Source of the DNA: Pelomyxa schiedti
Taxonomy: Eukaryota > Protista > Evosea
Assembly: GCA_020536535.1 (NCBI GenBank)
Contig: JAHLWZ010000602.1
Location: forward strand, 1 to 64,000
Direction: 5' to 3'
Length of the DNA stretch: 64,000 nt
In this document: one piece after another, positions 101-57,824 of the stretch
Layout: the number at the start of each line of letters is the position of its first letter
Numbering within the stretch: the stretch's first letter is position 1
Notes under the pieces: model-generated
Seen by the model: only the letters and a program-made list of their open reading frames with translations
What the model was told of the DNA's origin: nothing
Database searches by the model: none
Translations under genes and position numbers: made by a program

Positions 101-612
101 TCATTCATTATCTTGGGGGAGATGCATCTCCAGAGGGGGGTTGCACAAAGCATTGAGAGAGTCAAACACAACCCAAGCTGTTGGTTGGAGACTGGGACCA
201 GTTGCCACGCACTTGTTGATCAGACTCACCAACTGGGGTGGTGTTCCACGAGCGGTGCATAGAAAGCATCGTGTGAGTAATCGTCAACTGAGAGGTATTC
301 TGAAATCAGCCTTCAAAAGAGGCACAGGGTATTCCACATACAATAGGTCTGGCTTTGTTTCTTCATTCTCGAGAATGACACCTGATTGTTCCAGGTCAGG
401 TGATGCTTTGTGGTGAAAGGGATCACTCACCTTGGAGCAGAGACTCCTGACCAAGATGTAGGTTAAGCACACCACCCACTGTTTCTGGAGAGGCCTCACT
501 GCAAGTACAAAAACTTTGTGAGACTCTCCAAAACCTCACCTGTGATGATGCGGCCATCAACAACTTTTGCACTGTGAATGCACGTGTTTTCTGGTTCTGC
601 ATACTTCAACAC
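101..612 (-). pseudogene. Collapsed relic of the dynamin-like GTPase/pseudokinase family
   Basis: Contains family pieces in order: LKYAEPENTCIHSAKVVDGRIITGEVLESLTKF, VEYPVPLLKA, a trace of the SVDDY segment, and the C-terminus TARGTPPQLVSLINKCVATGPSLQPTAW...PLEMHLPQDNE*. About 2 kb of intervening sequence is missing, with stops and frameshifts. Confidence 0.85.
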
Positions 613-929
613 TGTTTCCTTCAGTGGGAAACTGCTCCAAAAAGAGAACAAAGAGGCACAAAGTATTTTATTCATCTTGGAATGGATGGATACATTTGGG
701 TGTGTTTGTGTTTGTGTTGAGGTTTTTGTATATTTATTTATAGAAATGAGGTGAACTCGGTGTGCATTTATAAAGGATTCCAAAGTCAAGGGAAAGGTAT
801 TGGGTATCTCGATGATCTTTCTGTGAACTTGATTTCCGAACTTGGTAAGTGATGACTCAGCCTCTGAGTCTCCAGTCTCGAGTCTTTCGAGTGTGCCTTC
901 TGCACAGTTTGCCTGTGTGTTCGCAGAAT

Positions 930-1110
930 CACACAACACACAGATTCTGGCAGTGCAACGGGAGAATGTGCTGCCAAAAGGAGAGTGATGCTGTGGTAAG
1001 GTGAGGCTGTGAGTGAGCAGACTCAAAATCTCCAGAGGATTGTGGAACTGAAATTTTTCTGGTTCCAAAAGGATTGTGGAACAAAAGAATGGGTTCTTTT
1101 CTCTTTGCAA
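930..1110 (-). pseudogene. Degenerate fragment of the family GTPase G1-G2 region
   Basis: KEPI..., WQHILP and CTARICVL occur in shifted frames and match exons 2-3 of the intact copies. Confidence 0.55.
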
Positions 1111-1175
1111 TTAACAATCAGCCTCAGTAGCCTATGGCCATAATGGCGTGATTCACACATGGAACCAAGAGACAA

Positions 1176-4100
1176 TCATTCAGTGACTCCAGCCAAGATG
1201 TGTTCTCTCGTGCACAAAATCCCCTGCTTGGTAACTTCTTCTTCTTTCAGGATTTCTTCATCAGAGCAAGTGGACAATGCCGTGAGATTCCTGAAGACAG
1301 CCCCAGAAGCGGTGCAGATTTGTGCCAGTGCCGTGCAACATCGCCTTTGCTGAGTAGCCACAATCCAATGCAGAAGCTTATCTATGAATATTCCATGTGT
1401 CATCTTGCTGAATGCACTGGAGTACAAGAAATCGTGGGCACTCACACAACAAAAACAAGTGCACATCTTGAAATCTCTTGGAATGGCAAACGAATTTGTT
1501 GCTGGAGATTCCAGCATTTGTTTGAGATGCTTGTCATAGATTCTTAAAACAGCAGCCTCTGTTATCAGATTGGGAACTGTTCCATTCAGTTCATCTGCAA
1601 TATTTTTGATGTCAACACATGTGTTGGCAAAGAAAACAGCAGGTGAGTAATCATCAACTGAGAGGCCTTCTGAAGCTTTGGTCATGACTTCTTTCAGACT
1701 TGTCAAGGCACGCTGTTCCCTTATTTCAAATGCTGCTGTTGCAAAGCAGAAAACGACACCATGTGGATGGTAAGCTCCAAGGAGCGCAGGCATGAACGGG
1801 AAGATGATTGCACCCAAGGGATCACTTATTGCATGGCCAGGAAGGTCCACAAGTTCGATTCCAGCCTTCAGAAGGGGCACAGGGTATTCCACAACGATTA
1901 TTGTGTTAAATACGGTTCGCTTCGTTCCATCATTCTCCACACCTTATTTTTTCTGATCAGAGTGATGCTTCTTGATGAAAGGAAAGGGACCTGACCACAC
2001 ACCTTGGAGCAGAGACTTCTGACCAAGATGTAGGCTGAGCTTGCCACCCACTGTCTCTGGAGGGGGCTCACTGTCTGCAATGGGTGCCCCAGGCTCGCTG
2101 CGAGTGCAAAACTTCGTGAGACTTTCCAAAACATCACCTGCAACGATGTGGCCATCAACAACTTTTGCACTGCGAATGCAGGCATCCTCTGGCTCCGCAT
2201 ACTTCAAAAGACAGATTGTGGCAGTGCCATGCCCACTCCGGACTGGGAGGATGTGCTGACCACAAAGGGAGTTGATGAGTGATGACTTTCCTAAAATTGG
2301 AAAGGAAAAAGGTGAAAGAGTGAGGAGGGTTAAACAAGTTCAAGAGAGGAGGCTCTGCACACACCAGCACCAGTGGGGCCAAAGAAAGCAATCCGAACAG
2401 GATTCTTGCTGCACACACTCCTCACAAATTCCTGTTCCTGTTTTGGCATGAGATCACTCACTTCAGGGGGCAGCTCTTTTTGCAACATTTCATACCTGTA
2501 CGAAAAATAGATTTTTGAATGGGGTCCCATTTGAGTAAATTTAGAAGAGTGGGAAGCCACACAAACCTTTGGAAACACTCAGAAATTGCGGGAATTACTT
2601 GGTCTCGTATGGCAACAAGTGCCTTTGTGAGCTTATCGTGGTATGTGTCACTTGGGTTGCAGTGTCTGTTCACAAACCTCGACGCCATGACGTACTCAAG
2701 TGGTGGGCCTTCAGCTCTCGGCACCTCACAGTCCTCCAGTGAACAACCATCAACGACATCCCTCAGGAAAATAGTGGATGCTTCTAATGGGTGAGTTCCT
2801 TCTGTTGACAATGGGGACTGTGGAGTTGTTCTGGGTGGTGACCCTTGTTCTTGCTGTGCTGTTGACATTGTAGGGTAAAAAGTGTGGAGTTTTTGCTGAA
2901 GCATACACATGCAATTAGCCATGTTGCTGGGGTTGGTGTTGGGACAAATATGTCTCATCCATAATATAGTCAAAACAAGTTCAGGAAGGGTTGTTCTGTG
3001 CTGGTTGATGTTGGCTCTTGCAAAGTCCACATCTGTGTGTGTAAACGATGCCTTCCCTGTGAGAACTGCACTTATTCCCCTTTTTGTCACACTGGTGAGG
3101 CTGACAGTATGAATATAATATAGAAGCAATAAAGCTGGTGAGAACAAAGGCTCAACATCCAGAGCTTGGTGGAGAGTGTCAATACAATGTTTTTTTTGAT
3201 CATTACTCAGAATCTGGCAAAGTGCCTTCATTGTCAGTGCTCCTAAATATGTTCTTAAACGATATTTCAAAATAAGGTTTTTCAGCGATATGTTTACAAA
3301 CCCAACCTGCATCATTATTGGCTGCAGGGCCAATGAAAGTGTAAACTGAGAGCAGTTCACAAGGATTTGGCTCACTGACAAGTGTGACCAATACCTTGGA
3401 TGCCTCAACAAGAGACATCCTCGTTGCAGGGTCACACTGGAGCAGTGAATGGACCAAGTTGCAGAACTCCTTTGGAAACGCTGGTGGTCTCATTGGGAAG
3501 TCATCATCCTCGGTCCCAAATGAAAATGCAATCTGGCCTGAGGGACCATATTCCATTGGGTAGCCTGGCAATGGCTCTTGGCCACGCATTGCCAGTTCGA
3601 ATAAAATACATCCAAGTTCAAATGATGGTTGCTGGTAAGACTGGTCAATACTCAAGGCATGTATTTTGTATTGTGCACAATTTTTAAGGGATAGGTGCAC
3701 ACCTTGTCACATTGTAAAATTGGATTGTGACCCGGATGTTGTGTGTGTCGTGCAATTCCATTGAGAATCTCAGGGGCAAGGTGACTTCGATTCCCAACTC
3801 TGTCAAGGATGTGTGCCGTTTCTGCCTTGAATGAGCCATCTGAAAATTTCATTGCACATCCAAGGTCAATCAAGACAACTTGTTCTTTGTTCTGCATTTA
3901 AATGAATATCCAGCAGTGAGAATAGAGAAGAAACACACCAAAGAGACAACGATGTTGTCCAACTTCATGTCAAAGTGAATGGTCTGGTTCACAAAGAGAT
4001 GGTTCAGGCCCGCACAAATATCTCTGGAGTACTTGTGAACAATGCCCCAGGGTGTGGTTGCAGGAACAGAGGGGAGGTTTTTCAAAAAGTGGCCGAGGGT

Positions 4101-4766
4101 CTCGGCGTGATACTCCAGAACAACCCACACACATGCATGAAACCTCTTCCTCACTGGATCAAATGCTTGCTCCTTTGGAATTTCAGGGAGGTTCTCATAG
4201 TAATCGTGTGGGGGCCTATCTGTGAAGTGGCAGAAGTACTGATTCACATTTGGGTGAGGTGTAAGACTGGATGACACCAGATATTCATTCTTCCATCAAT
4301 GGGTAAAATGAACCAAAAGGAAAACTGACTGTGTCAACACACCTCAAAGGCATTTGCTACGTTGCTCGATTGAATACCCCGGTAATTGAACAGCGCCTTG
4401 AGCACATAAGACTGATCCCTGAAGAACTCAGGGTGACCCTCCCCAATGCACTTCACCTCGAACACAATCCCTTTCCTTTCAGGTTAGAAGGACAAAAAAG
4501 AGGTGCTTCCACGACGAAACAATACCGTTGGATCCATGAGCAATCGGCCTCACCATCCTGAAGTTCTGTGCCACGACGGCGCTCGATGCCGTTCGCTTCC
4601 AGACAATTTTGCTTGCAGATTGTGCGAGGCGCGTGAAGAACGCTGCGCGCTGGGTCACCACTCGCTCATACTCCTCGTACTCCACAACTCGGCTCCTAGC
4701 TACAAACTGTGGTTGCGGTGTTTGGGACTGTGGTTGCTGTGCTATGCATCCCATGTAGTTTCCCAT
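1176..4766 (-). CDS. Chimeric gene: PINK1-like protein kinase + helical linker + dynamin-like GTPase (copy A), C-terminally truncated
   Basis: Starts MGNYMGC. Spliced kinase motifs are IAHGSNGIVFEV, VLKALFNYRGIQSSN, PHPNV, HFDMKLDN, DLGC and GNRSHLAPE. After the intron at 3243-3306, the open exon runs into GPPLEYVMASRFVNRHCN (family exon 1), then GPTGAG/KS, DLPG and FFANT. It stops at TGA 1176, before the hairpin and pseudokinase. Confidence 0.75.
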
Positions 4767-5356
4767 TGGTAACCACTGGCAAACAGAAACAACAAAAAAA
4801 ACTGGGAATACCTCTCCTGAGGAAAACCACCTCGCGTTAAAAAAGTCCCCATTTTCCAGCCAGTCCGGACCGATCATCAGTTCTCAGAAAAAAAAGTAGT
4901 GTAGGTTAGCGGCATGTAGTCCAAAGCACAGGCACCACACACAAAACCTCACTATGGCATTCAACCCTTGTGCTACACCATGCAACACAACAGCACCTCC
5001 TCCACAAGTTGGTGGTAGGTCTGGTCCCCTTGACTCTGCTGTGATTGTTCCTATTTCATCACAAGACCACATCACGCCTATTGTAGTGTCGGACTCCCCC
5101 TCCAAGTCCTATTGCTGATACAATCTTGCCTGTATGTTCATCCACACTAAATGACCATGGAGTACCAACCCCCACATCTATTACCTCAACTAAACTAAAC
5201 ACCCACAACATGCTCTTTTTCTTTGCTGCAACAGGATAAAAAGGGGAGTGTGTAAAATCTTCTATTATGAGAGATGGTGACTTAGTTTTTGGCGAAGAGT
5301 AGCTGAGGGAGGGAAAACAGAGGAAGAAACAATGGTTTTCTTCCAAGTTTGGATAA

Positions 5357-8300
5357 TTAATGATCAGAAGATTTAGATGTTACCGGTGTCTGCTCGTCGG
5401 GGAGCATTTCAACACAGGAATCGCACATATCACAAAGACTTTGAACTACCACCCAAGCTGCTGGTCTCCGCTTGAGCTTAGTAACCACGCACTGGTTGAT
5501 CAGATTCACCAACTGGGGTGGCGTTCTGGGAGCGATGGGCAACTGAAGAGCAGTGGTCGTGGCGAGGCACCGCAGCAGTGTCGGCTTGGGTGTGAGCTCT
5601 GACAGAATCACCCCAAACGCAAATATGTCAACTTTTGGGGAGTCGGAAAGCCAGTTTGTATTTACACATGTACCGCTGTTGCCATCATCTGAGATGTCTC
5701 TGCCTTTGCTGCCTGTATCGTCACGGAAGCCGACCAGTGCAGCGGTCACCTTGTCACCTTCTGTGGTCACGACAACGTTCTCCAGCTTAAGATTGCCATA
5801 TACAGTGCCGTGGTGGTGCAGGTCCATGATAGCGGTGATTATGTCCTTGGCAATTACCAGTGCTTCAGAGAGCTTCATGGTGGATATGTGCTCCTCCAGG
5901 TAGGCCTTGAGCGTGAATTTGAACTGTGGGTACACCATGCTCCATACATTGGGCTGCTCTCTGTATACCGTTTGCAGCTTCAGAACATGGGTAGAGCACT
6001 GTGCCATTTGGCTCCAGTAATACAGGTTCTCAAAGAACGCACTCCGATATTCTTTGTTTCGGTTTTTCAGGTCAATAACCTTCACTTGAGTAGTCGTTGT
6101 GGTTGATTGTGATTCTGAGGCAGAAGTTGTGGTTTCCGGTGCCAGCGCACTTGTCATTCTGGGTTCCACTGAAGTAGTGGGAGCGTTGGTTTTGGCGTCG
6201 GTGCCGGTGTCGGTGTCGTCGGCTAATGCGTCGGTCCTCCACGCTGAAAACAACAGGTAGTCGTCGGTCACAGTAGCCGTTACACTGCTCGAAGTCGTAG
6301 AAGTAGCTACACTGCTACTGCTCGAAGTCGTAGTGGTTGTAGTTGTAGTAGTAGTCGCAGGGATGTCGGAGTCCACAGGGGTAACCTGGCTGTTGTTGTT
6401 TGGACATGGTGGCCCCGCAATGCATACCAATGTAGATGTTGCTGCAGATGACAATGAACTGGCTGAACTTTGGACTGGCCGCTCCCACAATATCTCGCCC
6501 CGTTTCTCAAGTGCCTCGGCATTCAGTGTTCCAAAAAGGAGACGCAGATCCTGCACATCTGCGGTATTCCCAGCACCCCAAGTTTTTTTCATTTTCTCTC
6601 TCTGAATACAGAGTGCTGTGACCTTATTTAGATATATCTGGAAATACTGAGTTGTACGTTCACGGCATACATATTCCAGTTCCTTTCGTTGTTTTTCTAC
6701 CTTGTCGCTGTCACATAGAGAGTCAAGCATGTGTTGTGCCACATTTTTTTTAAAGTCATTGCCAGTGAGATGTTCACCCGTGGCAGACATCACTGAGGCT
6801 CCTGTCACTCCTAAAAGTGAACACATACTTAGTCCAAGTGCCACTGCCAATGCCGCACTGGCTCCTCCAGTGAGCGGTACTGCAACAGCTGTTGCCAAAA
6901 ACGCAACAAATCCAAGACCAGTCAGACCCACTACACCCGCCAGGGCGAGTCGGTGCATCTTATGACCATAGGTAGGAGCTGCACCCCGGAGCAGCTTTCT
7001 CACGTCATTGTCTTCGATGTCCATAATTTGTTGACATACTGCTTTGACATCATCTTGGATTTGCTTCCGCATTGTAGTAATCACGGGATGAACCACGTTC
7101 ACTGTTAGCCAATGACCAAGCTCTTTGGTAAGATAGGTCTGGAATTGTTCTGTTTCTGAGGCCATCGACCTGGGGTTATACTCCAAGGGCAGAGAAATAG
7201 CTTTCCTAAAGAAGTCCTCTTGTGATTCCTGTACTTTCTGTTTTAGAAGATCCGGAAGCTTCTTTGTGTGTTCAGTGATTCTACCCAAGATGCCTGCTTT
7301 CGCGGCCTCAATCTTCTCACTGGCAGCTTTTCTTTTTGTTTCTATATCTCCAGGAGAGCAGGACAATACCGCAAGATTATTGAAGAAGGTCCCTGATGCC
7401 GCCGATATTTGTTCAAGTGCCTGACAGCACTGCCTCTGCTGAGCAGCAATTATCCAGTGCAAGAATTTGTTCATGAATGGCGCATGTGTCTGGTGCACGT
7501 TGTCGTAGAAGAGGTCGTGTGCACTCACACAACAAAAAGATGTGCAGGTTGCAAAATCTTTAGGAATGTTGAACCACCTGGTTGCTGGTGACTGAAGCAT
7601 CTGCTTGAGGTGCTCACCGTAAACTCTTGTAATAGCAGCCTCAGTTGGCCTGTTCCCGTGGAGCTCATCTGCTATTTTACGACGGTCAACACCGGTATTG
7701 GCAAAGAAAACCTCTGGTATGGATTCCTCTACCGAGAGGCCTTTTGAAGCCTGAAAAAGTAATTTTTCCAGACTTGTCAAAGCGTGCTGTTCATTTAATT
7801 CAAATGCCGCTGTTGAATAGCAGAAAACGACACCATGTGGACGGTAAGCTCCAAGGAACACAGGCATGAATTGAGAGATAGGTTTTCGAAACTGGTCACT
7901 CTTTGCATGGCCAGGCAGATCCACAAGTTCAATACCAGCCTTCAAAAGGGGCACAGGGTACTCCACAACGATGATTGTGGTCAATATTTCTCGCTTCCTT
8001 TCTTCATTCTCATCTCCTTTTTTCTTGTCAGAGTAAACTTTAAAGTGGCAGGGAACACACCTCGGAACAGAGAAGAGCGATCCAGGAATGGAAAAAGCTT
8101 GCCGCCTGCTGTTTCTGGAGGGCCCTCATTGTCATCATTTGGTGGGGGCTCATCAGCGCAAAACTGTGGAGGGCTCCCCAAAGCCTCACCTGCTCTTTTT
8201 GGAGGGGCCTCATTGCCATCATTTGGCGGGGGCTCATCAGTGCAAAACTTCGTGAGACGCTCCAAAATCTCACCTGGTACGATGCGGCCATCAACAACTT

Positions 8301-9023
8301 TCGCCGAGCGAATACAGGCATCTTCTGGCTTGGCATACTTCAACACACACACCCTGGCAGTGCAATGTCCACTCCTCGCTGGGAGAATGTAACACTTGAA
8401 AAGGGAGTTGATGAGAGTAGACTTTCCTGAAGGTTTAAAGGAGAAGTTGAGAGGTGTGACAACCAGAGAGGGCAGAGAGGGGTCTGCACACACCAGCACC
8501 AGTGGGTCCAAAGAAAGCAATTCGAATAGGCTCCTTGCTGCACACACTCTCCACAAATTTCTGGTCCTCTGGTGGCATGAGCTCACTCGCCTCTTTTGAC
8601 CCTAGTTTTGTTGCCAGCATTTGCTCCAGGAACTTATACCTTCGTTTTGGTGTTTTAGTTAATTTTTTCCCCCAAAAAAACTTTGCTCAAGTCAGACCTT
8701 CTGAAGCACTCGGAAATGACAGTCGCTTGTTCTTGAATGGCCGTGATGGAAGTTTTGAGCTTTTCGTGGACATCCTGACTGTTGCCTGCGTGAGCTGTCA
8801 CGAACCTCGAAGCAGCTTCGTACACTAGCGGTGGGCCTTCGGCAATGGCAACCCTTTTTTTATGACTGCCACTATCGGAACAAGTGACTGAGTGAGGTGT
8901 GTTGGTATGAGTTTCAGTACTTCCTGAATTGCCAGCAGTGGCGCTAACGGGGCTGGCACTGGGGGAGGTGTTGTTACTAGGAGGTGTTATTGGTGCTTTT
9001 TCTTTGGAGTGGGTGTTCCCCAT
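5357..9023 (-). CDS. Dynamin-like GTPase - hydrophobic hairpin - pseudokinase protein (copy B, intact, 4 exons)
   Basis: MGNTHS start; G1 GPTGAG/KST; G2 GHCTAR; G3 DLPG; hairpin ...AVPLTGGAS...; kinase fold with YGNLKLEN (no HRD Asp) and VGF (no DFG Asp). Three GT-AG introns restore the frame. Confidence 0.85.
8105..8249. repeat. Imperfect in-frame tandem duplication (period 84 nt) in the copy B GTPase domain
   Basis: FCTDEPPPNDGNEAPPKRAG versus FCADEPPPNDDNEGPPETAG. Confidence 0.85.
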
Positions 9024-9381
9024 TCGTGCACGACCACCTTAGCAAAAATGTGGCGAAGAAATGTTCTTCTGGCGCAACTAGGGTGATTCCGAGTGCTTGC
9101 TTTCTTTTTACACTGTAGATTCCCAGAAATCCCTCAGTTGATTAGAACTACAGGGAACACACTTTTTATTTTTTTGGGTCTTGCCAGGTCATGCTCCTCA
9201 GAGGCTGAAAAGACCACAAAACGGAATGTGCCTGGTCCAGATATTTCTGAATTTTCCCTTCACAGGGCACAGAGAACCAGGAGTTTTAACATTAAAGCGG
9301 TAAATTATTGTAGTAGGCTCGATGGCCTGGTCTATTTCATACACAGTAGTGCACCAGCCCGAAAATGGAAACAGCTATGCC

Positions 9382-12295
9382 TCATTCAGTATTGAGGGGG
9401 AGCATCTCCAGAGGGGTGTTGCACAAAACAACAAGTGCACCATGCACCTGGTGGGCTGTTGGTCGGAGATCAGGGTCAGTTGCCACGCACTGGTCGATCA
9501 GATTCACCAACTGGGGTGGTGTCCCACGAGCGGTGGGCAACTGAGGAGCAACGCCAGCGGTCGTGGCGAGGCACCGCCGCAGTGTCGGCTTGGGTGTGAG
9601 CTCTGACAGAATCACCCCAAACGCAAATATGTCATCCTTGGGGGTGCAGAAAAGCCGGTTGGAAGAAACGCAACTGTTGGTGCTGCTGGTATCATGACCT
9701 TCATCACCACCAAAATCTCCTGTGATGGTGCTGAATCCGGCAACTGCACAACGAACCATCTTGTTGTTTTCTGTGGTCACCACGATGGTCTCCAGCCTGA
9801 GATTGCTGTGAACAATCTTATGGTGGTGGAGGTCCCTGAGAGCAGCGATGACGTTCCTGGCTATAACCAGTACATCGGCAAGTGTCATGGTTAAAATGTG
9901 CCTCTCCAGGTGCTCCCTTAAGGAGTATGTGAACCGTGGGTACACAACGCACCATACGTCAGCCTGCTGCTGGAATACCATGTGCAGAGGGAGAATGTTC
10001 GAAGAGCGTGGTGCCATGTAGCTCCAGTGATGCAGGTCCTCAAAGAACTCCCTCTGTTCACTTTCGTTGCACTTACAAAGATCAACAACCTTCACAAAAA
10101 CGGGATTGCCTTCCAGAATGCCTTCTCGTATGCATGACTCCTTTGGATACAATGCAGGTGAGTTGATAAGGTCAGGTTGGTCTTGCAGCATCCGGCTCTG
10201 TATGTCAAGTGTCCTGGCGTAGAGTTGGCCAAATTTAAGACGCATCGACTGTATCTTGTCTCTAGGGCAAGTCTCTACTATCCTTTTGACTGTACCGCGG
10301 GTTGTCACTTGATTCTGACCTCCCTTGATGAGCTCTTCTACCCATCTGCTGGCCACTGTTTCCAGTTTCGCTCTTTGGGCTTCTAATTCTTTTGGTGCCC
10401 AAAGAACTGAGTCAAGCATTTGCTGTGCAGCCAGTTTTTTGAAGTCGTCGTCAGCATGTTTGGTTGCAAGTAAAGAATCAAAAAGATTCAGTGCTAAACT
10501 TCCTCCAGTTGCTGCAGAGCCCACTCCCATTCCTGCAAAACATAATCCAAGACTGGCTCCTGCAGTGAATGGTGCTACAACCATTCCAACGACGGCCACT
10601 GCACCAATACAAAGGAGACCCAGCGACGCAGTCAATACATATCTGTGCATTTTTGCATCATAACCAGCTGTGAGCTGCAACACATCGACATCTTCAGTGT
10701 CACTACGTCGGAAGTTTTTGTAAACAATTTTCTGTATTTGCCCACACACTTCATCTATCACAGGATGAGTCACATTCACTTTCAGCCAAGGACGAAGTTT
10801 GTCTAGAAGATAATACTCAGCTTGTTCTCTTTCTGTGGCGTGCAAGTTTGGCTCATACTTGAAGGGCAGAGAAACAGCTTCCCTCAGGAAGTCACCTTGT
10901 ACTTGCTGCACTTTCTGTTTCAGAAGAAACGGAAGCTGCTGTGTGCATTCAGTGATTTCAGCCAAGATGCTTTCTTTTGTGGACAAAAGTGTCTGCTTGG
11001 TAGCTTCTTCTTTCTGGATTTCTTCACAAAAAGTGGGCAATGCTGTGAGATTCCTGAAGAAGGCTCCTGAAGCGGTGCAGATTTGCGCAAGTGCCATGCA
11101 ACATCGCCTCTGCTGGGTGGCGACAATCCAGTGCAGAAGTTTGTCCATGAATAACCCATGTGTAAATTTGCTGGATGGTTTGTTGCACATTAAGTCGTGT
11201 GCACTCACACAACAAAAAGACATGCACTTCTGGAAATCATCTGGAATGGTGAACGATCTCGTTGCTGGTGACCGAAGCATCTGTTTGAGATGCCTGTCAT
11301 ATATTCTTAAAACAGCATCATCTGTTATCAGATTGGGATCTCCATTGAGCTCGTCAGCAATATTATTGATGCCAACACCTATGTTGGCAAAGAAAATGTC
11401 GGGTGTGTAATCATCAACTGAGAGGCCTTTTGAAGCTTCAGCAATTACTTCTTTTAGACTTGCCAAGGCCACCTTGGAGCAGGGCAGAACGATCCAGGTG
11501 GGGAAAAGGCTTGACAACCACTGTTCCTGGAGGGGTCAAGTTTGTGAGACTCTCCAAAACCTCACCGGTGACGATGCGGCCATCAACAACTTTCGCCGAG
11601 CGAATGCACGCGTTTTCTGGGTCCGCATACTTCAACACACAGATTCTGGCAGTGTTCTCTCCATCCTGCATCGGGAGAATGCGCTGCCCACAAAGGGAGT
11701 TGATGAGTGATGTTTCTCCTAAAATATGAAAGGTAAAAAAGAGAGGGAGCAAAAAGTTCAAGAGAAGAGGCTGCTCACCACCACCGTCAGTGGCGCCAAA
11801 GAAAGCAATTCGAACAGGCTCCTCTTTGCTGCACACACTACTTGCAAATTTATGTTGTTCCGACATGAGATGATTCCTTTCAGGGACCCCTGTCTCGGGT
11901 AGATCTTTCTGCAAACTCTCATACCTTTACGAAAAATAGGTTCCGTTTGAGTGAATTAGAAGAGTGGGAAACCAAACAAACCCTAGGAAGCAGTCAGAAA
12001 TTGCGGGGACGAAATGTTGACGGAAGGCATCGAGTGACTTCACGAGCTTCTCGAGGTGTGTGTCTCCTCTGTTGCAGTGTCTGTTCACGAACTTCGACGC
12101 CACAACGTAATCGAGCGAGTCACTTTCGGCGGTTGGAACCTCCTTTTTTGGATTTGCAAAAGTGCTGGTGCTTGGCGAGTTCGTTATGTTATCGGTAACA
12201 ACAATGGAGTTGACACAGGCCCCTGTGCTCGACGATTTTGCGGGTTCTGCTGGTGGAACTCGATTTCGGTTGGAAGCACTCTTGGTATTACCCAT
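9382..12295 (-). pseudogene. Family copy C with inactivated GTPase (possible pseudogene or GTPase-dead variant)
   Basis: MGNTKS start. G1 reads GATDGG/ET (Lys to Glu). About 290 nt including G3 DLPG are deleted at ~11470, with a frameshift. The downstream ~695 codons (stalk, APFTAGAS hairpin, HSN/AGF pseudokinase) are open. Confidence 0.7.
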
Positions 12296-13479
12296 TTCAT
12301 ATCTTTCGGGTGGAAGTTGTTTTCCCTCCAGTTCCTGTAAAAGCGCCCCATCAGAGTACCTTCCCTTTCCACACTCCAACAGGCGTGGTCCTGCTCCTTT
12401 GCCATTGTCAAGCACATGGTGTGAGTAAATACCTTGGTTGTTGGTGGAAACATGCGGCCTAAGTCCCCGGGCTTCGAGGAAAAAGATAGTAAAAAAAAAG
12501 CCGTTGTTACGGTGGTGACGGGTACGAGGAGAAGGCGGAAATGTGGCGACGAGCCATGACGGACAACATCTGCACTAACGGGTGTGGCAACACGGACATG
12601 TACAACAATGCACCAGCGGGTACCCTTGCCTGTTGCCGCTGTTGTATGGGCGTTACTGGTGTGTCTTGCTAGTGCCGGTGTTTTTTGGCGTTGCAGGTTG
12701 TTGCCTTCAGCTTTAGGTTTTTTCCTCCCTTTTTCGGTTTCCCTTTTTGTTTCCTTTTTCCTTTTCTTGTCAAACTCCTAGTAGCTTGTTTGAAATATAA
12801 CCAGCATTGAGTTATATCTGTACACTCTTGCAACATCGGGGCTTTCCCACAGAGCACCACTGAAATGGTCAGCAATCAAGCTTACTCTGGTTTCTGGGGC
12901 TCCTTTCCTTTTTCATGGATCTCTTGGGTGCGTCCTCAGCTAACTCCTCCCTTTCCAACTAACCTGACAAGCATGTGTGGATTCCAGTGGCGATTTTGGT
13001 ATGTCCTTCTCCTTTTTTTTCCTTTTCTGTTTTCCTTTTTCTCCTTTTTTTTTCCTTTCTCCTTTTTGATTGCTCTTGTTTTATTTTTTTTTCCGGTTTG
13101 TTGTCTAGAATTTCAGCTGGTATGTGACTTCTTCTCTCTTCGTCATCCCAGTTTCACTTTGTGTAAAAGGTAGTGACTTGCAGCAGCATATGGTCTGGCA
13201 TGCCCAGGAGAGTGGCTCAACTACACATGACCCCAGATTGATGAACTGGGCACAGCACTTCACCTCTACAATAACAACACCCTTTTACACTTGAACTGAC
13301 ACCAACGAAGAAATTTTTTTTTGGCAACTTTTCTTGTTGCATTCTCTTGGTGTAGCTCCTCCTATGAGATGATGCTCGGCCCAAACCACACAAACACAAA
13401 CCTTCATCAAAGGAGTCTGCCACCGAACCTCAGCCATGAGAAGTTTGGAAATTAGATTTATTTGAGGTTAGTGACACCC

Positions 13480-16400
13480 TTAGTCTTTCTCACCTGGTAC
13501 CATCTCAATGGGGGATTGGCACATTGAGCTGAGAGCTTCAAACAAAAGGCGGGCTGTAGGGCGTACATCAGGGTCAGTTGCCACACACTGGTTGATCAGA
13601 TTCACCAACTGGGGTGGTGTTCCACGAGCGGTGGGCAACTGAGGAGCAACGCCAGCGGTCGTGGCGAGGCACCGCCGCAGTGTCGGCTTGGGTGTGAGCT
13701 CTGACAGAATCACCCCAAACGCAAATATGTCAACCTTGGGGGTGCAGAAAAGCCGGTTCGCCGCCTCACTGCAACTGCCATCTTCTGTGATTGTGCTGAA
13801 TCCGGCAACTGCAACGTCGGTCACCTTGTTGCCTTCCACGGTCACCACGATGGTCTCCAGCCTGAGGTTGCTGTGTACAATGCTACCCTGGTGGAGGTCC
13901 TTGATAGTGCCAATGATTTCCCGGGCTATCACAAGTGCATCCTCCAGCCTCATGGTGGATATGTGCCTCTCCATGTGTTCCTTCAATGAGTATGTGAACC
14001 GCGGGTACACAACGCACCACAAGTTGGGTTGTTGTCTGAATACCATTTTCAACGGCAGCACGTGCTGTGAGCACTGCGTCATCTGGTGCCAGTGATGCAG
14101 GTCCTCAAAGAACTCCCTCTGTCCACTTTCGTTGCGCATAGGAAGATCAACAACCTTCACATAAACGGTGGTGTCGTTCCAAATGCCTTCCCGTGTGCAG
14201 TTGCCTTCGAGAGCAGCACATGGTGAAGAAGTGAGAGACGAACAAGGTGGGAGAAGGACTGGATTGTCATGCAGCATCATGTCCTCTGAAGCACGTATCC
14301 GGGCAATCAGTTTCCCGAATTTCCTACGCATCGTTGACCACTTTCCCAGCGCGGTTATCTTGTCTTCAGGGCAAGCATTTATCATTGTGAGTCTCTGTTT
14401 ACAGAGGTCACTCACGCGCAGCATACGTTGCGCTATGAACTCCGTGGCTCTTCCCCTGGCCATAGTTTCCAGCTTCACTCGTTGTGCTTCTACCTTTTCT
14501 CGTTCGCAGAGTGAATCAAGCATGCGTAGTGCCAAGTCCTTTTTAAATTCATCATCAACAGTGTAATTTATTTCAGGGTAAAGTGATGCTCCCAGAGTTC
14601 CTAAAGATGCAGTCACACTTGTTCCCAATCCGAATATTAGTAAACTGCCTCCTCCAGTGACAGGGGCGAGGAGAAGAGTGGCCAAAGTCGCACATATCGA
14701 AAGGCAAGTCAGACCTACCATGGCTGCTAGAGCGTGGCGCCGCATCGTCGCAACATAGTTAGGACCTGCATTCCACAACAAATCTCTCACATCTTCAGTT
14801 GTATCAAGTTGTTGAAGGTTTTCTTCAATACATTTCTGTATTTGAATACGCACTTTAGTTATGACGGGATGAATGACATTCACTTTCAGCCAATGAATGA
14901 GATTTTGCGTGAGATATGTTTCAGCTTGTTGTGTTTTTGAGACTCGGGAACTGGGATCATACTCAAAGGGTAGAGAAAGAGCTGTCCTCAAGAAGTGATC
15001 CCTAACACTCTGGATTTCTTCTTTCAGAATAAATGGGAGCTGCTGTGTGCATTGTGTTATATCAGCCAAGAGCCTTTCTTCTGTGCAATGAATCCTCTCT
15101 TCGGCAGTTTTTCTCATTTTCTGTATATCTTCACAAGAACATGTGCACAATGCTGTGAGGTTCCTGAAGAAGGTCCCAGAAGCTCTGCCGATTTGCTCAA
15201 GGGCTGTACAGCACCGCTTCTGTTCAGCAGCAATGATCCAGTGCAAAAATTTGTCCATGAATAACCCATGTGTAAATTTGCTGGATGGTTTGTTGCACAT
15301 TAAGTCGTGTGCACTCACACAACAAAAAGACATGCACTTCTGGAAATCATCTGGAATGGTGAACGATCTCGTTGCTGGTGACTGAAGCATCTTTTTGAGA
15401 TGCCTGTCATATATTCTTAAAATAGCAGCCTCTGTTATCAGATTGGGATCCCCATTCAGCTCTTCAGCAATATCATCGAAGTCAAAATGTGTGTTGGCAA
15501 AGAAAATGTCGGGTGTGTAATCATCAACTGAGAGGCCTTTTGAAGCTTCAGCAATTACTTCTTTCAGAGTTGTCAAAGCCCCTTCGTCCTGTTTACCAAA
15601 CTTTGCCGTTGCAAAGCAGAAAACTACACCATGTGGACGGTAATGTCTCAGGACCAAAGCAATGAATGGGAAGATGATTGCACCAAGGGAGTCACTTATT
15701 GCGTGGCCAGGCAAGTCCACAAGTTCGATGCCAGCCTTCAGAAGGGGCACAGGGTATTCCACAACGATTATTGTGGTCAATATGTCTCTCATCGTTTCTT
15801 CATTCTCGACACCTGATTTTTTCTCGTCAGGGTCAACAAAGAAACCTTTTTGGTGAAAGGAATCAGACACCTTGGAGCATAGCAGAACGATCCAGGTGGG
15901 GAAAAAGCTTGCCAGACACTGTTTCTGGAGGGGTCAAGTTTGTGAGACTCTCCAAAACCTCACCTGTGACGATATGGCCATCAACAACTTTCGCCGAGCG
16001 AATGCACGCGTTTTCTGGGTCCGCATACTTCAGCACACACACTCTGGCAGTGCAATGTCCATTCTGTACTTGAAGAATGTGCTGCCCACAAAGGGAGTTG
16101 ATGAGTGATGTTTTTCCTGAAAGAAGGTGAGAGTGAGACTGGGAGCAACAACAAGGGAAGTGGTTCTGCACACACCAACACCAGTGGGGCCGTAGGTAGC
16201 AATTCGAACAGGCTCCTCTTTGCTGCACGCCCTCCTCACGGACTCCTGGTCCTCGGGTGGCATGAGTGCACTCTCTTCAGGTATCATCATCATATCAGAA
16301 AGCTGTTTCTGCAAACTCTCATACCTTTAATTTATTAAATATTCGAGGTCTAGTTAAGAAGTGGAAAGCCAAACCGTCCAAAGTAATTGACAGGAATAAG

Positions 16401-16619
16401 TTGTTCGCGTACGGCGACGAGCGACTTTGCAAGCTTTTCGTGGTATGTGTCGCATGCGTTGGTGTGTTCCTTCACGAACCTCGACGCCACTACGTAATCG
16501 AGCGGTTTTACTTCCTTTGGTTTTGCTGTAGCACCAGTTGTGGGGGTGGAAGGGACAGCAGTGGGAGTTGTGGCAGGTTCTATTGGCGAAACTTGAGGCT
16601 TACCGGCGCTGATGCCCAT
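13480..16619 (-). CDS. Dynamin-like GTPase - hydrophobic hairpin - pseudokinase protein (copy D, intact, 4 exons)
   Basis: MGISAG start; GPTGVG/KT; GHCTAR; DLPG; FFANTHFD; LAPVTGGGSL hairpin; HSNLRLET and VAGF pseudokinase motifs. Introns lie at the same positions as in copies A, B and E. Confidence 0.88.
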
Positions 16620-16684
16620 AAAATTTTTTAACTTGGTTTTTTGATTTCCACAATTGCAGTAAACTTATATATATGGTGGCTCTG

Positions 16685-16790
16685 TACACCAACACCATAG
16701 TGACCAAGAACGCAATTCTAACAGGCTCCTTACTGCACACCCTCCTCACGGACTTTGGGTGAAATGAGATCACTCACTCATGTCATTCAA
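16685..16790 (-). pseudogene. Isolated relic of family exon 2
   Basis: Translates to SVRRVCSKEPVRIAF, then a degenerate G1 and the homologous intron donor. Confidence 0.65.
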
Positions 16791-17205: not shown

Positions 17206-18226
<1,021 letters not shown>

Positions 18227-51908: not shown

Positions 51909-54900
51909 ATGGGGAACACCTTCCAATCCAAGAGAGTACTACTTGAGGACGATGTGTCCGGCGATTCCCCATCCCACAAGCCGTGCGCGGCACCCGAGAC
52001 GGTTGTTGATTCCAGCCCTCGCCCCACAACTAGTGGCGACGACGGTAGCGTCAAAACTACTGTTACAAGTAACACGCCCTCACACACAGCGACTATTTCC
52101 CCAACAAGCCCGACGACAGCAACGCCTGCCACTGCCACTGCAACTTCGAATTCAACAACAGCTGCTACTGTTAATAATACGAACACACAAGCTCCATTGC
52201 CGTCCCCCCAGGCCATCGTAGTAGAAAGGCTTCTGCGAAGATACACTCACCCGGGTGACGATCACAACCAAAAGCTTGAGAAGACACTTGGGGGAATACG
52301 AACAGACGTGATGCCCAGGATTTCTGACTGCTTGAAAAGGTGTGGGTCTTTACTTTACCCGTAGTTTATTCTGATTTGAAATGTATGGTGTTATGTCTTG
52401 GCTTCAAAGATATAGAACCCTCCAAAACCGCTTGTCTCTCATTACAATGCCTGAGGAGGGTGGGTTGATGTCACTAGAAGCACAGAATTATGTACAGAGT
52501 GTATGTAATAAGGAAGATATCCGACTTGCTCTCTATGGTGCTACTGGTGCTGGTATGCAATAAACATCTCTAGTAGTTAGCTAGCTCCCTCAATGGGTTT
52601 TTTTTTCACCAGGAAAGTCTTCCCTCGTAAATTTCCTCTGTGGCTGGAAAATTCTTCCTATTAAGAGTGGTCACTGCACCGCCAGAGTGTGTTTGTTGAA
52701 GTATGCAGAACCTAAAGATGCTTGTATTCGAAGTGCCAGAGTTGTTGATGGAAAACTTGTCCCAGCTGATTTGTTTGTGAGCTTGGCCCCATATTGTGAC
52801 GAAGAACCAAACGAGACACAAAGAGCTGCTGTTAGGGACCTGCTCAAACTGTACCTTGATCGTCGTAATCTCCTCCCAGGCATGTTGAGCCCTTTTTAAG
52901 CATTTCGCAATACTAATGTTGCAAGTAGAGAACATTCAAGACTTATTAACCACTGTACTCATCGTGGAATACCCTATTGCATTCCTCAAGGCCGGCATAC
53001 AACTGGCTGACCTGCCAGGTGCGAGTAAAGGCGACCCTCTTGAACATATCTTATCTCCATTTCTGCCTTTGTTCTTGGCAGCCTTCCGTCCACATGGGCT
53101 TGGTTTTTGTTATGGGATAGCGGCTTTTGACAAGGCCGAGAATTTCGCCTGGAAGAAGCTAATGAAAGTGATGGTAGATTCAGATTCCTGGACACCCGTT
53201 TTCTTTGTCAACACCAGAACTGACCTGAAGGACCTTGCTGGAGAACTGGATATACCTTCAAAAGTGGTAACAGAGGCCCACCTCACCCGATTATGTGACC
53301 AGCGACTTGAACAATTACTCCAGGCACCCTCAATTACTCTTGATATTTTGTCCACTCAACTGGACTTTGAACCAGACACCTCTTTCTGCATAGTGGGTGC
53401 TCGGAATATGCTACCCAAGCGGGCCAAGTACATGTCGTATTACACTCTGTTCATGGACAGGTTTGTGCGCTGGATCGTTTCTATACAAATGAAGGCATGC
53501 TGTCGGGCACTAGAGCAACTGTCAGCAGCTTCAGGGAATTTCTTTCAGATTCTCATGGGTTTGTCAACCAGCTCGTGTGAAGATATCCAGAGAATGGAAG
53601 CTGATGCTAAAGAGAGAATTTTGCTCGTCAAAGCGAGGATCTTGACAGGAATTGACCAATGCACACAGGCTTTTCCCTCTCTTTTAGTACGCAAGGTCCA
53701 GGAACAACGGGATGCTTTCTTGAAGGAAGCTGTTTCTCTGTCTCCTGGCTCGGAAAGAGAACGAGCTGAAAAATATCTTGCTGAAAATCTACGAGAATGG
53801 CTGGAAGACAACGTGATCTCTTACGTGATTAAGGAAGTACACAGCCAAATACAGAAGTCCATTGAAGAAAATACTCGACAACTTCTGAACGTTAAAGATG
53901 AGAAGGTGAAAGATTTACTACGGAGTGCATTACCATACTTCAATGAGAAGGTCTACAGGCGCTCATTGGTAGCAGCAGTGGGCTTGTTTGGTGTCGCTGG
54001 CTGTAATGGCCGGCACCATGTGGGTTAAATACAAATGCGTCGATGATGATTTCAAAAGGAGTGTTGCACAAAGCATGCTTGACTCCCTCTGTGACCCAAA
54101 AAGGGTGGAGGCGCAGAGGTTAGAACTCCAAGCAGGAGCTAAGCACAAGGTGGAGGACTTCATTAGCAAACGCCTGAATGATGTTCGAATACTGTCTGCA
54201 CAGCGACAAAGAATGAAAAATTATCGTTCCCAGGAAAGTACTGAGTGGGACACTACATATTGGACAGGAATGCGTAGCGATTTTGGAAAGCTATTTGCTG
54301 AGACACTTCACATTCAGGACCTGCTGTTGGAAGACCCACCAGTCTTTCCAAGCCCCTCTGCTTCTTCCTCGCCAACTTCAACATTCTCGCCATGTTATTC
54401 TCCTCTGGAAAGATACAGGAAGGACTCATACCCACTGGAAGCCATTTGGAACAACCAAACTGTTTCTGTGAAGGTTGTTGATGTTTCAGAGGGCAGCAAA
54501 GACAATCCGGGGAAGTTCTTCGAGGATCTATATCACTGGCATAGAATGGCGCAGTGCTCGCCACATGTGCTGCCGCTGCATATGGTATTCAAGCAGACGG
54601 TATTCCGATGCAACACCCCTCTCTCGGAGAGTAGAGATATGAGGGGAGGAGGGAAGGAGCATACGAGCCAACAATCCGAGGTCTGGTGTGTGGTGTACCC
54701 ACAGTTCACATGCACACTCAATGACTTCTTGGAGAGGCACATATCCTCCATGCAGCTGATCGACGCACTGGAGATAGCCAAGACAATCATCACCGCGATC
54801 AGAGACATCCACGAATTCGGGACTGTACACGGAAACCTCAGGCTGGAAGCCGTGGTGGTAAATGCACAAGGCAGCAAAGTGACCGGCGTTGCAGTCGCCG

Positions 54901-55391
54901 GGTTCAGGACAAAAGCAGGAAGCAGCAATAACTCCACTGATAACCCCAATGACAATGGCGGTCGCAGCAGCAGCAGCAGCACCCGCGATGACGAGAACAA
55001 CACCTCATTCAGTTCCGCGAACCTGCTTTCTCGCGCAATGGACGACAGTTCCGCCGACCGGCTTTTCCACTCCCCGAAAGAACACGTCGACATACTCTCG
55101 TTTGGTAAGATTCTATCCGAGCTTACTCCCAAACCAAAGCTTCTGCGCTGTCACATGATCGGCGGCGATGAGACCACCGCCTGCACAGCGAGAGGTGGTT
55201 CTTCTGTTGTCACTGATGCTACTCTGCATTTGGTCACGGCGCGTGGCACTCCCCCTCAGGTGGTAAAGTTGATTAGCAGGTGTGTGAGCACAGAAGCCAG
55301 TCTTCGCCCTACGGCCCAGAAAGTAGTTAAGCGCCTTACCAACATTTGTGCATCCCCCATTGAGATGCTGGCACTGTTGGAAGAAGATTGA
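51909..55391 (+). CDS. Dynamin-like GTPase - pseudokinase family copy E, frameshifted in the hairpin (possible pseudogene)
   Basis: MGNTFQS; GATGAG/KS; GHCTAR; DLPG; FFVNTRTD; frameshift near 53990; HGNLRLEA and VAGF pseudokinase motifs. Confidence 0.78.
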
Positions 55392-55490: not shown

Positions 55491-57824
55491 ATGGACCCGT
55501 CAACGTCCCAGAATTCCCACGCGTTGCCAGTGTCATCGTGCGATCAGCAGTGCGCTCGCAGTGAGCACGTGCTGTCGGTGTCGCGGCTCGTCTGGGACTG
55601 CGTCGTGGTGCCCGGCTGGCTCGGCTCCGCCCCCAGCACCAAATACGAGGAACACGTGGACAGCCTCTACGGCGACGCGTCCTGGAAGAGGCACCTGCTG
55701 CGGCTGCTGCGCCTCGGCGAGGCCCTGTTCCCGCTAGCGGGGCTGTGCTGCCGCCGCGCCGCCGAGGACTGCCGCCGCGTCTGCGTTTCTCGTTACGCCC
55801 TCGTTGCCTTGGCAGCCGTGGCCCCGGCTCCTTCCTGCCTCGCCTGGGTCGTTAGGCACAACAGGAGCGGCGGAAGCGGAGGGAGCGACCGCGCGGGGGA
55901 GCATTATGGGAGGGAGTGGCGCTGGCAAGTGACGGTGAAGGAGGTGGCGTGGGTGATGTGGGGCCTCTGCTCTTCTGGGAACGAGAAGGCCCTGAGTCGC
56001 ATGTTTGGTAACGAACACGGCGGCACAGAAGGAACTTTCCCGGCATTATGGGACGGGCGCCGCATCCCGGAATGGGACGATGACATTTCTACTTCTAGCT
56101 CTGCAAGAAGCAAGGCTGTGCTATTGGACCAGGTTTGTGATTACGTGAAGCCTGTATTGGATCAGGCCTGCATGTCTGGGGATTTAAACACTGTGAAGTG
56201 GATCCTGGCTTCTTCGACGTTTGGAATTTCAAGGGACGAAGCACCTTGGAGGCTTCTTGGGCCTGTAAAGTTGGCTTTGACAAGAGGCCACACGGCTTTG
56301 GTGAAGTGGCTCTTTGATGAATATGAGCTTCTTGAAACCTATGAAACTCATTCAGAAGTACTACATGAACTGGCGACGTTATGTGCAGCCGGAGAGAACC
56401 CAGACTGTGTCAAGTGGGCAATCTTGGACTGGGTACTTCTAGACCCCTCGATTGATATCCTTTCAACAGTGTTGGTGAACGAGCATGCTTCCTTGGAACT
56501 GTGCCAATGGGTGCAAGAGAAATGGGCAGTAGGTCAGATCGTCAGTTCCTACACAATAGAATGCATCTCGAACCCTGAAATTGCAAAGTGGGCTCTGATA
56601 ACGCTGACTTGTGAATTTACCCACGTGGACTTGAGTGTGATGTGCGCAAGTGTTGGTTTGTCGTCATTTGCAGAATGGCTAATAGCTGAGAGGCAATTCG
56701 TACCAACCCCATCAACGTTTTTTATGGCGGGCTCTTGCAGAAGTGTAAAAGTTGAATTTCTACAGTGGCTTTCAACCAATGTTGCTCTGTCCCTCAAAGA
56801 CCTTATCCACACCCTAATTAACGCTTTGCTTTTGGGGAACACCATAGTTGCAGCTTGGTTGGATCAGAGGTTCCAGGTAATGGGTTCTTGTATCACCTCG
56901 TCACTAGACCCTTCTAAGAGTGTTGCATGTACCTGTCTAGATGAATTATGTTCTACAACCAACACGGAGGGACTGCAGTGGTTCCTCACCAATCTTACAC
57001 CAAAGGCACGATCAACGATCAGTTCGGATTGTGTATGCAAGGCAATTAACACCTCAATTAGTACATGGAATTACCCTGTTACAGAGATGCTACTGAAAGC
57101 CTTCCCACACTTTGTTCCTCAGACTTCAGTTCTAGAAAAGATTTTCATCGCTTTCATGAAATATGGTTTTTCCAAGCTGAAGTGGCTTGTTTCGTTCATT
57201 GATTACTCATCACTGTTGGCAATACAAGGCTTTGTGGCAAACTGCCTGTGCACCAAGAAATTCTTTCCATATTCAACCAAGGTTGTCAAGTGGATCATCA
57301 CACAGTTCCACGTTGGGCGTTCTAGTATCATGGTTTCTCACGGTCGCCTCCTTTTCCGCATGCTTCATCTACACAAAATGGCTGGTGCCAAGTGGCTCAT
57401 AGACACCTTCAAAATCTCATTTGCAGAGGTGGCCTAACTGTTATTCACTATTACTAAAAAATACCAGGTTATGAATATGTTTGACCACATGCTTCCATCT
57501 GCAGACTACTTCGATATCAACGTGGCAACCTGGAGGATGCTGCTGAACAAGTTCCCAGAAATCGACCTTCATACCATCAACAACCACATGATGCCCATTG
57601 TGGCCAGGTCACCATTCATAGCAACATTCACAATCAAAAGGTTTTGTAGGGACAGCACTGAGATTACTACTCTGCTTGATGCAGTTCGCCAGTACCATAC
57701 CGACAAACCAGAACCATCACCGACGTGTGAAGTGTTTCTATGGTTGGGAATGCAATTGCGGATCGACATTTCTTCAAACACAACCACGGTACTGTTTTTT
57801 GGCTCAAAACGTGGAACCACATAA
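55491..57824 (+). CDS. Hypothetical helical-repeat (degenerate ankyrin-like) protein
   Basis: 648-codon ORF with repeated A-C-x-x-G-x-L-x-x-V-K-W-type units, joined by a likely 39-nt intron (57429-57467) to the next in-frame ORF. Confidence 0.65.

Follow-up and report, generated by a model that had tools for sequence, protein, structure and literature searches.

A fast-turning-over family of dynamin-class GTPase-pseudokinase genes in Pelomyxa schiedti and its kinase-bearing relatives

A gene cluster in Pelomyxa schiedti, a free-living anaerobic amoeba with endosymbionts (PMC8887013), joins a dynamin-like GTPase to a kinase fold that lacks its catalytic residues. The cluster lies on contig JAHLWZ010000602.1 (C602; assembly GCA_020536535.1), of which the first 64,000 nucleotides were analysed (the window); coordinates are window positions and the gene copies are lettered A to E. 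Four large copies (A to D) lie within 1176-16619 on the minus strand and a fifth, copy E, at 51909-55391 on the plus strand. Two of the five (B and D) are intact and the other three (A, C and E) damaged, and the window also holds three relics. This arrangement had been described in an initial annotation, and reading of exons and frames bears it out. The reading favoured here, held with somewhat more confidence than doubt, is that these genes are a pseudokinase branch, specific to this lineage and turning over fast, within a eukaryotic family of BDLP/mitofusin-class GTPase-stalk-kinase fusions, and work by the mechanism set out below.

GTPase, stalk and hairpin

Copy D (13480-16619, minus strand; NCBI Pelo_7647) encodes 990 amino acids, in agreement with the sum of its exons (16619-16375, 16324-16176, 16116-15871 and 15812-13480). 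Its predicted structure is confident, with a predicted local distance difference test score (pLDDT) of 84 and a predicted template modelling score (pTM) of 0.84, and shows in order a BDLP/mitofusin-class GTPase, a stalk, a hydrophobic hairpin and a kinase fold. The G-domain core (15484-16191, minus strand), with G1 split by intron 2, G2 CTAR, G3 DLPG and G4 NTHFD, matches Pfam Dynamin_N (PF00350) at E 9e-12, and its best PDB profile match is BDLP 2j68 (E 2.7e-8). The G1, G2 and G3 motifs had been described correctly for B and D, and the N-terminal domain does model as the dynamin-superfamily G domain that had been predicted, but it is of the BDLP/IniA/mitofusin class and not of the Mx or GBP kind. 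Mx and GBP proteins share the superfamily and lineage-specific expansion with the window genes; assignment to their class was rejected, as both are absent from the best 50 structural matches and no GED or GBP Pfam domains are present. The family G4 consensus is NTKxD, which is canonical in a paralogue on contig C492; the Lys is replaced (by His, Gly, Cys or Arg) in all window copies, and the Asp is retained in A, B, D and E.

As in the BDLP/mitofusin class, the helical neck and trunk carry a membrane hairpin at the tip. In copy D this hairpin (14581-14742, minus strand) is identified by hydropathy as 54 uncharged residues around a central Pro-x-Thr-Gly-Gly turn, and its length by the same measure is 54-58 uncharged residues among the copies. 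The two helices first assigned to it are supported by hydropathy, but the model of copy D gives only the first, at low pLDDT. The hairpin region of copy C matches Pfam ApoL above the cut-off over profile positions 92-187 of 298, a partial match in this one copy and not a full ApoL domain.

Bacterial dynamin-like proteins (Nostoc BDLP 2j68/2j69, Mycobacterium IniA and SynDLP) and mitofusins thus resemble the window proteins in G-domain class, helical stalk and tip paddle or hairpin, whereas the C-terminal kinase fold, the Met-Gly start, the replaced G4 Lys and multi-copy turnover set the window proteins apart. A mitofusin-class fold with a hairpin would also suit housekeeping organelle fusion, with these proteins replacing mitofusin on mitochondrion-related organelles or peroxisomes. 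That role is improbable: the Pfam scan gave no Fzo_mitofusin match, and copy-number turnover, mosaic identity among copies and a fused kinase are unlike a conserved fusogen. Roco proteins and LRRK2 also join a GTPase and a kinase in one chain, but their Roc-COR part is a Ras-like GTPase, whereas the window GTPase is dynamin-class by structural match.

The shared intron positions noted initially hold for three introns in the five copies. Introns 1 (phase 2) and 2 (phase 1) interrupt identical codons in every copy, and the second of them divides the P-loop between its G and K. Intron 3 lies in phase 1 after LQG/FRG/LPG; it is GT-AG in A, B and D and probably GC-AG in E, and in copy C the shared donor is joined to a cryptic acceptor after a deletion. 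The starts MGISAG, MGNTHS, MGNTKS and MGNTFQ are confirmed as Met-Gly, although copy A has no such start of its own. Gly2 is combined with Ser or Thr at residue 6, the myristoylation pattern, in B, C and the paralogues C882a, C824 and C492, and occurs without it in D, E and C882b; an N-myristoyl group is predicted as probable from these N-termini.

Five small MiSeq transcriptome libraries were made for the P. schiedti genome paper. The share of copy D 31-letter words is 0.90-0.92 in three sequencing runs of unstated type and 0.22 in a single-cell RNA run; a spliced copy D transcript is expected to give 0.918, so that the three runs fit transcription and splicing of copy D, by inference.

Relatives of the fusion and origin of the pseudokinase

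In the pseudokinase of copy D (13519-14202, minus strand) beta3 Lys and alphaC Glu are preserved, and the Gly loop, HRD Asp, DFG Asp and APE are lost. The changes of HRD to HSN, YGN or HGN and of DFG to AGF or VGF were read correctly at the outset, and the domain is a kinase fold without catalytic residues, with Ser/Thr-rich loops in place of the activation segment in the pseudokinase copies. The genome-wide count that the initial annotation called for comes to at least 13 P. schiedti loci: five on C602, two on C882 and one each on C1748, C733, C824, C492, C406 and C495. The C824 kinase is complete (Gly loop, VAIK, HRD, DFG and APE), and that of C492 has all motifs except the DFG glycine. The kinase tree groups nine dead copies in a clade whose sister is this pair, with support of 93 for the family and of 87 and 99 for dead clades. 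The dead copies retain the beta3 Lys (lost in C406) and alphaC Glu; neither aspartate remains, nor do the Gly loop and activation segment. Because the C824 paralogue carries every catalytic motif, kinase death is a derived state within a family having catalytically complete kinases, and the pseudokinase as ancestral state is rejected on the active paralogues and the tree. Separate clades of dead kinases are found in Pelomyxa, Acytostelium, hemichordates and rotifers, those of rotifers nesting among active kinases; kinase death has recurred in at least four lineages, several times independently.

Several of these loci have features of their own. The C824 gene (2881-6013 of extract L030) has a Met-Gly start and a fully canonical kinase, and is a candidate active partner of the pseudokinase copies. 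The C406 gene (1132-7005 of extract L033), named Pelo 'caspase 8', is a 2008 aa model with a dead kinase and no hydrophobic hairpin; in the NCBI prediction its long tail is fused with caspase-like domains. Remnants of a retrotransposon reverse transcriptase and RNase H (379-1740 of extract L028) lie just upstream of the duplicated C882 pair, and the second C882 copy has an apparent frame break in exon 1 (700-1750 of extract L029).

The taxonomic range, also asked for initially, takes in amoebae, a chytrid and animals. A search by a profile built from the non-kinase region gives 55 proteins at E below 1e-10, with Acytostelium subglobosum, the chytrid Gonapodya, bdelloid rotifers, hemichordates and amphioxus among the carriers; the hemichordate and amphioxus members are annotated DSTYK-like. 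Most full-length relatives have a C-terminal kinase, several add RING, and one Pelomyxa copy adds a caspase-like domain. Homology with eukaryotic Dynamin_N-stalk-kinase fusions covers all three parts, G domain, stalk and kinase: residues 103-979 of copy D align with an Acytostelium protein (E 3e-56), and stalk-only profiles match at 99.7% between Pelomyxa and the protist set, 93% between Pelomyxa and rotifers and 96% between the protist set and amphioxus. A. subglobosum has eight such genes with neighbouring locus tags in a tandem array near a scaffold end. This array, at the end of DF837604, combines one near-canonical kinase with several dead ones and parallels the C602 cluster.

In an unrooted FastTree phylogeny of G domains, built with no mitofusin rows, a branch with support of 97 has every kinase-bearing row on the same side; these rows fall into two groups, one holding the window family with Acytostelium, Gonapodya and rotifers, the other the deuterostome DSTYK-like proteins and a Pelomyxa patatin fusion. 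A single origin of the kinase-bearing fusions is possible. Separate dynamin-like GTPase-kinase-patatin fusions occur on C927 (2607-6911 of extract L036), C1256 and C682, and the patatin-fusion G domain groups with animal DSTYK-like proteins. The P. schiedti genome has 34 Dynamin_N matches, with further dynamin-like genes on, for example, C291, C1376, C265, C1409, C187 and C1216. Three metagenome-contig proteins (P0016, P0019 and P0021; about 930-1100 aa) are close G-domain relatives without a detectable kinase, in which the C-terminal part may be a swapped domain.

DSTYK-like proteins share with the window family the order of Dynamin_N, stalk and kinase and a length of about 900-1000 aa; they are whole-chain structural neighbours and have stalk homology by transitive profile match, but form a separate G-domain group, and the hemichordate members gave no sign of a strong hydrophobic hairpin. 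In the structural atlas a molluscan Dynamin_N and kinase cluster has a template modelling (TM) score of 0.70 over residues 48-982 of copy D, followed by DSTYK-like proteins and chordate DSTYK at 0.47, above bacterial dynamin-like proteins by query TM. The kinase of chordate DSTYK is active and its chain gives no Dynamin_N match; the window copies are catalytically incomplete. A search with the amphioxus kinase returned amphioxus and hemichordate proteins and no vertebrate DSTYK sequence, and an atlas feature search with the non-kinase part, skipping dynamin families, returned bacterial clusters and not DSTYK. Membership of vertebrate DSTYK in the family is suggested by the structural models. 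DSTYK phosphorylates STING at late endosomes (PMC11933320), and its N-terminal part has been described only as non-catalytic (PMC8636471).

The architecture occurs in many protists and in invertebrate DSTYK-like proteins, so the candidate new system of the initial annotation is not a system type limited to this locus; a Pelomyxa-only novelty was rejected on its presence in Acytostelium, a chytrid, rotifers, amphioxus and hemichordates. Many DSTYK-like proteins are already listed in databases with both Dynamin_N and a kinase; the parts are known and the architecture is on record. In the literature searched, no paper connects DSTYK with dynamins or reports a fusion of dynamin and kinase in amoebae, and the GTPase-kinase family is apparently undescribed in those papers. 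The present analysis adds the active Pelomyxa paralogue, the recurrent and independent loss of kinase activity and the selection profile.

Constraint and turnover in Pelomyxa

Ratios of nonsynonymous to synonymous substitution (dN/dS) were estimated by the Nei-Gojobori method on the last exon. The pseudokinase has a dN/dS of 0.53-0.58 (95% intervals 0.39-0.82), significantly below 1, and the G domain 0.61; the hairpin and following helix, at 0.88-1.05 with intervals that include 1, are the least constrained part. The active C824/C492 pair stands at 0.23, the window-type copies at about twice that. No region is significantly above 1, and positive selection as a demonstrated result is rejected. 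The per-domain profile suggested initially thus shows a pseudokinase retained under purifying selection, looser than in the active paralogues, with the stalk tip freest. From this contrast the pseudokinase looks like a docked regulatory module rather than a variable sensor. The effector first envisaged stands as to its single chain, G domain, membrane hairpin and real pseudokinase, but the pseudokinase sensor is unsupported, that domain being more constrained than the hairpin and stalk tip.

These results bear on an autonomous executioner resembling MLKL, in which the pseudokinase would sense an invader signal and free a membrane-damaging GTPase-hairpin. The retained beta3 Lys and alphaC Glu with Ser/Thr-rich loops in the activation-segment place, the ApoL match of copy C, repeated kinase death in tandem arrays and relatives with caspase-like, RING or patatin domains would all suit it, and MLKL likewise joins a pseudokinase and a membrane-active part in one chain. 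Yet the pseudokinase is constrained and not diversifying, the single ApoL match may reflect a Gly/Ala-rich hairpin, and BDLP/mitofusin-class proteins typically tether, fuse or repair membranes (for mitofusins, PMC8565484). MLKL, moreover, has a four-helix killer domain where the window proteins have a dynamin-like GTPase, and shows no special similarity beyond the generic kinase fold (rank 33 in the structural comparison). An executioner is accordingly judged unlikely, though less so than organelle fusion.

Turnover is visible in the remaining copies. Copy B (5357-9023, minus strand; exons 9023-8698, 8639-8494, 8426-8061 and 8016-5357), examined through its last exon, is open across four exons, amounts to 1165 aa by exon arithmetic and has a Ser/Thr-rich insert before the pseudokinase. 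Copy C (9382-12295, minus strand; Pelo_7646, 916 aa if the NCBI-predicted splice holds) has its P-loop Lys changed to Glu and has lost intron 3 and about 75 codons, G3 included; its stalk, hairpin and pseudokinase are still open. Copy A (1176-2760, minus strand) keeps G1 to G3 and the beginning of the stalk and stops at 1176, before the hairpin and kinase; its exon 1 is in frame with the tail of an upstream kinase gene. That gene (2567-4766, minus strand) has a Met-Gly start and intact catalytic motifs, and NCBI merges it with copy A into a single protein, Pelo_7644, a possible chimera predicted from sequence with an active-type kinase ahead of the GTPase. Copy E (Pelo_7664; introns 52340-52409, 52553-52612 and about 52880-52925) has a frameshifting deletion in the hairpin near 53990 and inserts in the pseudokinase.

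The relics, all on the minus strand, are an internally deleted copy at 101-612, with G-domain scraps and a kinase C-terminus, 94% identical to the end of C882a; a scrap like exon 3 around G2 at about 935-985 (limits approximate), read from the sequence, with a 25-nt exact match; and a scrap of exon 2 at 16676-16754, upstream of copy D (78% identity, E 6e-12). Directly upstream of the cluster is a short frame like a proteasome alpha subunit C-terminus (17798-18226, plus strand), and just past copy E a 648-codon frame with ankyrin repeats (55491-57437, plus strand).

Sequence identity of D with C is 52% at the hairpin and 95-99% in stretches of the G domain and kinase, a pattern indicative of gene conversion between copies. 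The two C882 genes mirror the C-B pair; C and C882a as allelic haplotypes were rejected at a dS of about 0.28. Birth-and-death turnover, as proposed at the start, is evident in the damaged copies, relics and duplications. Given that three of the five copies carry damage, that there are three relics, that C495, C733 and C882 (C882b) hold other broken copies, that dN/dS is about twice that of the active pair and that the G4 Lys is lost, the cluster might reflect mostly neutral drift, in which surplus duplicates of an ordinary signalling GTPase-kinase of the C824/C492 type decay without a specific new function. Nine dead-kinase copies nevertheless hold long open frames, pseudokinase dN/dS is significantly below 1, G1 to G3 are kept in the intact copies and the word shares fit a spliced copy D transcript; drift as the main account is rated a little below the executioner.

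Proposed mechanism and its implications

Under the favoured reading of a pseudokinase branch of the fusion family, the protein would be anchored on an inner membrane by the stalk-tip hairpin and the probable N-myristoyl group, and GTP would drive G-domain pairing and opening of a closed BDLP-like form, as in BDLP and mitofusin. In ancestral members opening would switch the attached kinase, which would be the output. In the window copies the non-catalytic kinase would be kept as a docked module that gates opening and polymerisation; active paralogues, for example the C824 gene, may be its partners or may phosphorylate it. These copies would act by binding and remodelling membranes, and the variable hairpin or stalk tip would determine which targets they prefer; the L4 loop of MxA, where specificity is set at the stalk tip, offers a parallel. 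The most likely context would be control of endomembrane compartments holding prey, symbionts or invaders.

Several points weigh against this reading. Only two of the five window copies are intact, and the replaced G4 Lys may alter GTP specificity or turnover. Relaxed constraint fits the dN/dS pattern equally well, the direct stalk match between Pelomyxa and amphioxus is weak (10%), and chordate DSTYK reaches a TM score of no more than 0.47 to the copy D model, over 595 residues. Kinase docking is proposed from pTM and atlas superposition, and activity, localisation and partners are proposals from sequence and model.

A role in conflict or defence, inferred for the window genes from their turnover, is plausible, given the repeated expansions, the added RING, caspase-like and patatin domains and the part of DSTYK in STING signalling (PMC11933320). 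A wider and more tentative proposal, which we hold to be possible but doubtful, is of an old eukaryotic membrane-anchored GTPase-kinase fusion family in cell-autonomous defence, which would have repeatedly given pseudokinase partners in tandem arrays (Pelomyxa, Acytostelium, rotifers, hemichordates), would work as kinase/pseudokinase pairs on membranes and would survive as vertebrate DSTYK with a degenerate mitofusin-like N-terminal two thirds. Should the reading hold, amoebae, a chytrid and animals would share a direct coupling of a mechanochemical membrane GTPase to a kinase, and the repeated switching-off of the kinase with the domain kept would be a natural experiment on the use of a pseudokinase for a dynamin. 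For human DSTYK, which acts as an endosomal kinase in STING signalling, it would also provide a testable hypothesis about the N-terminal part.
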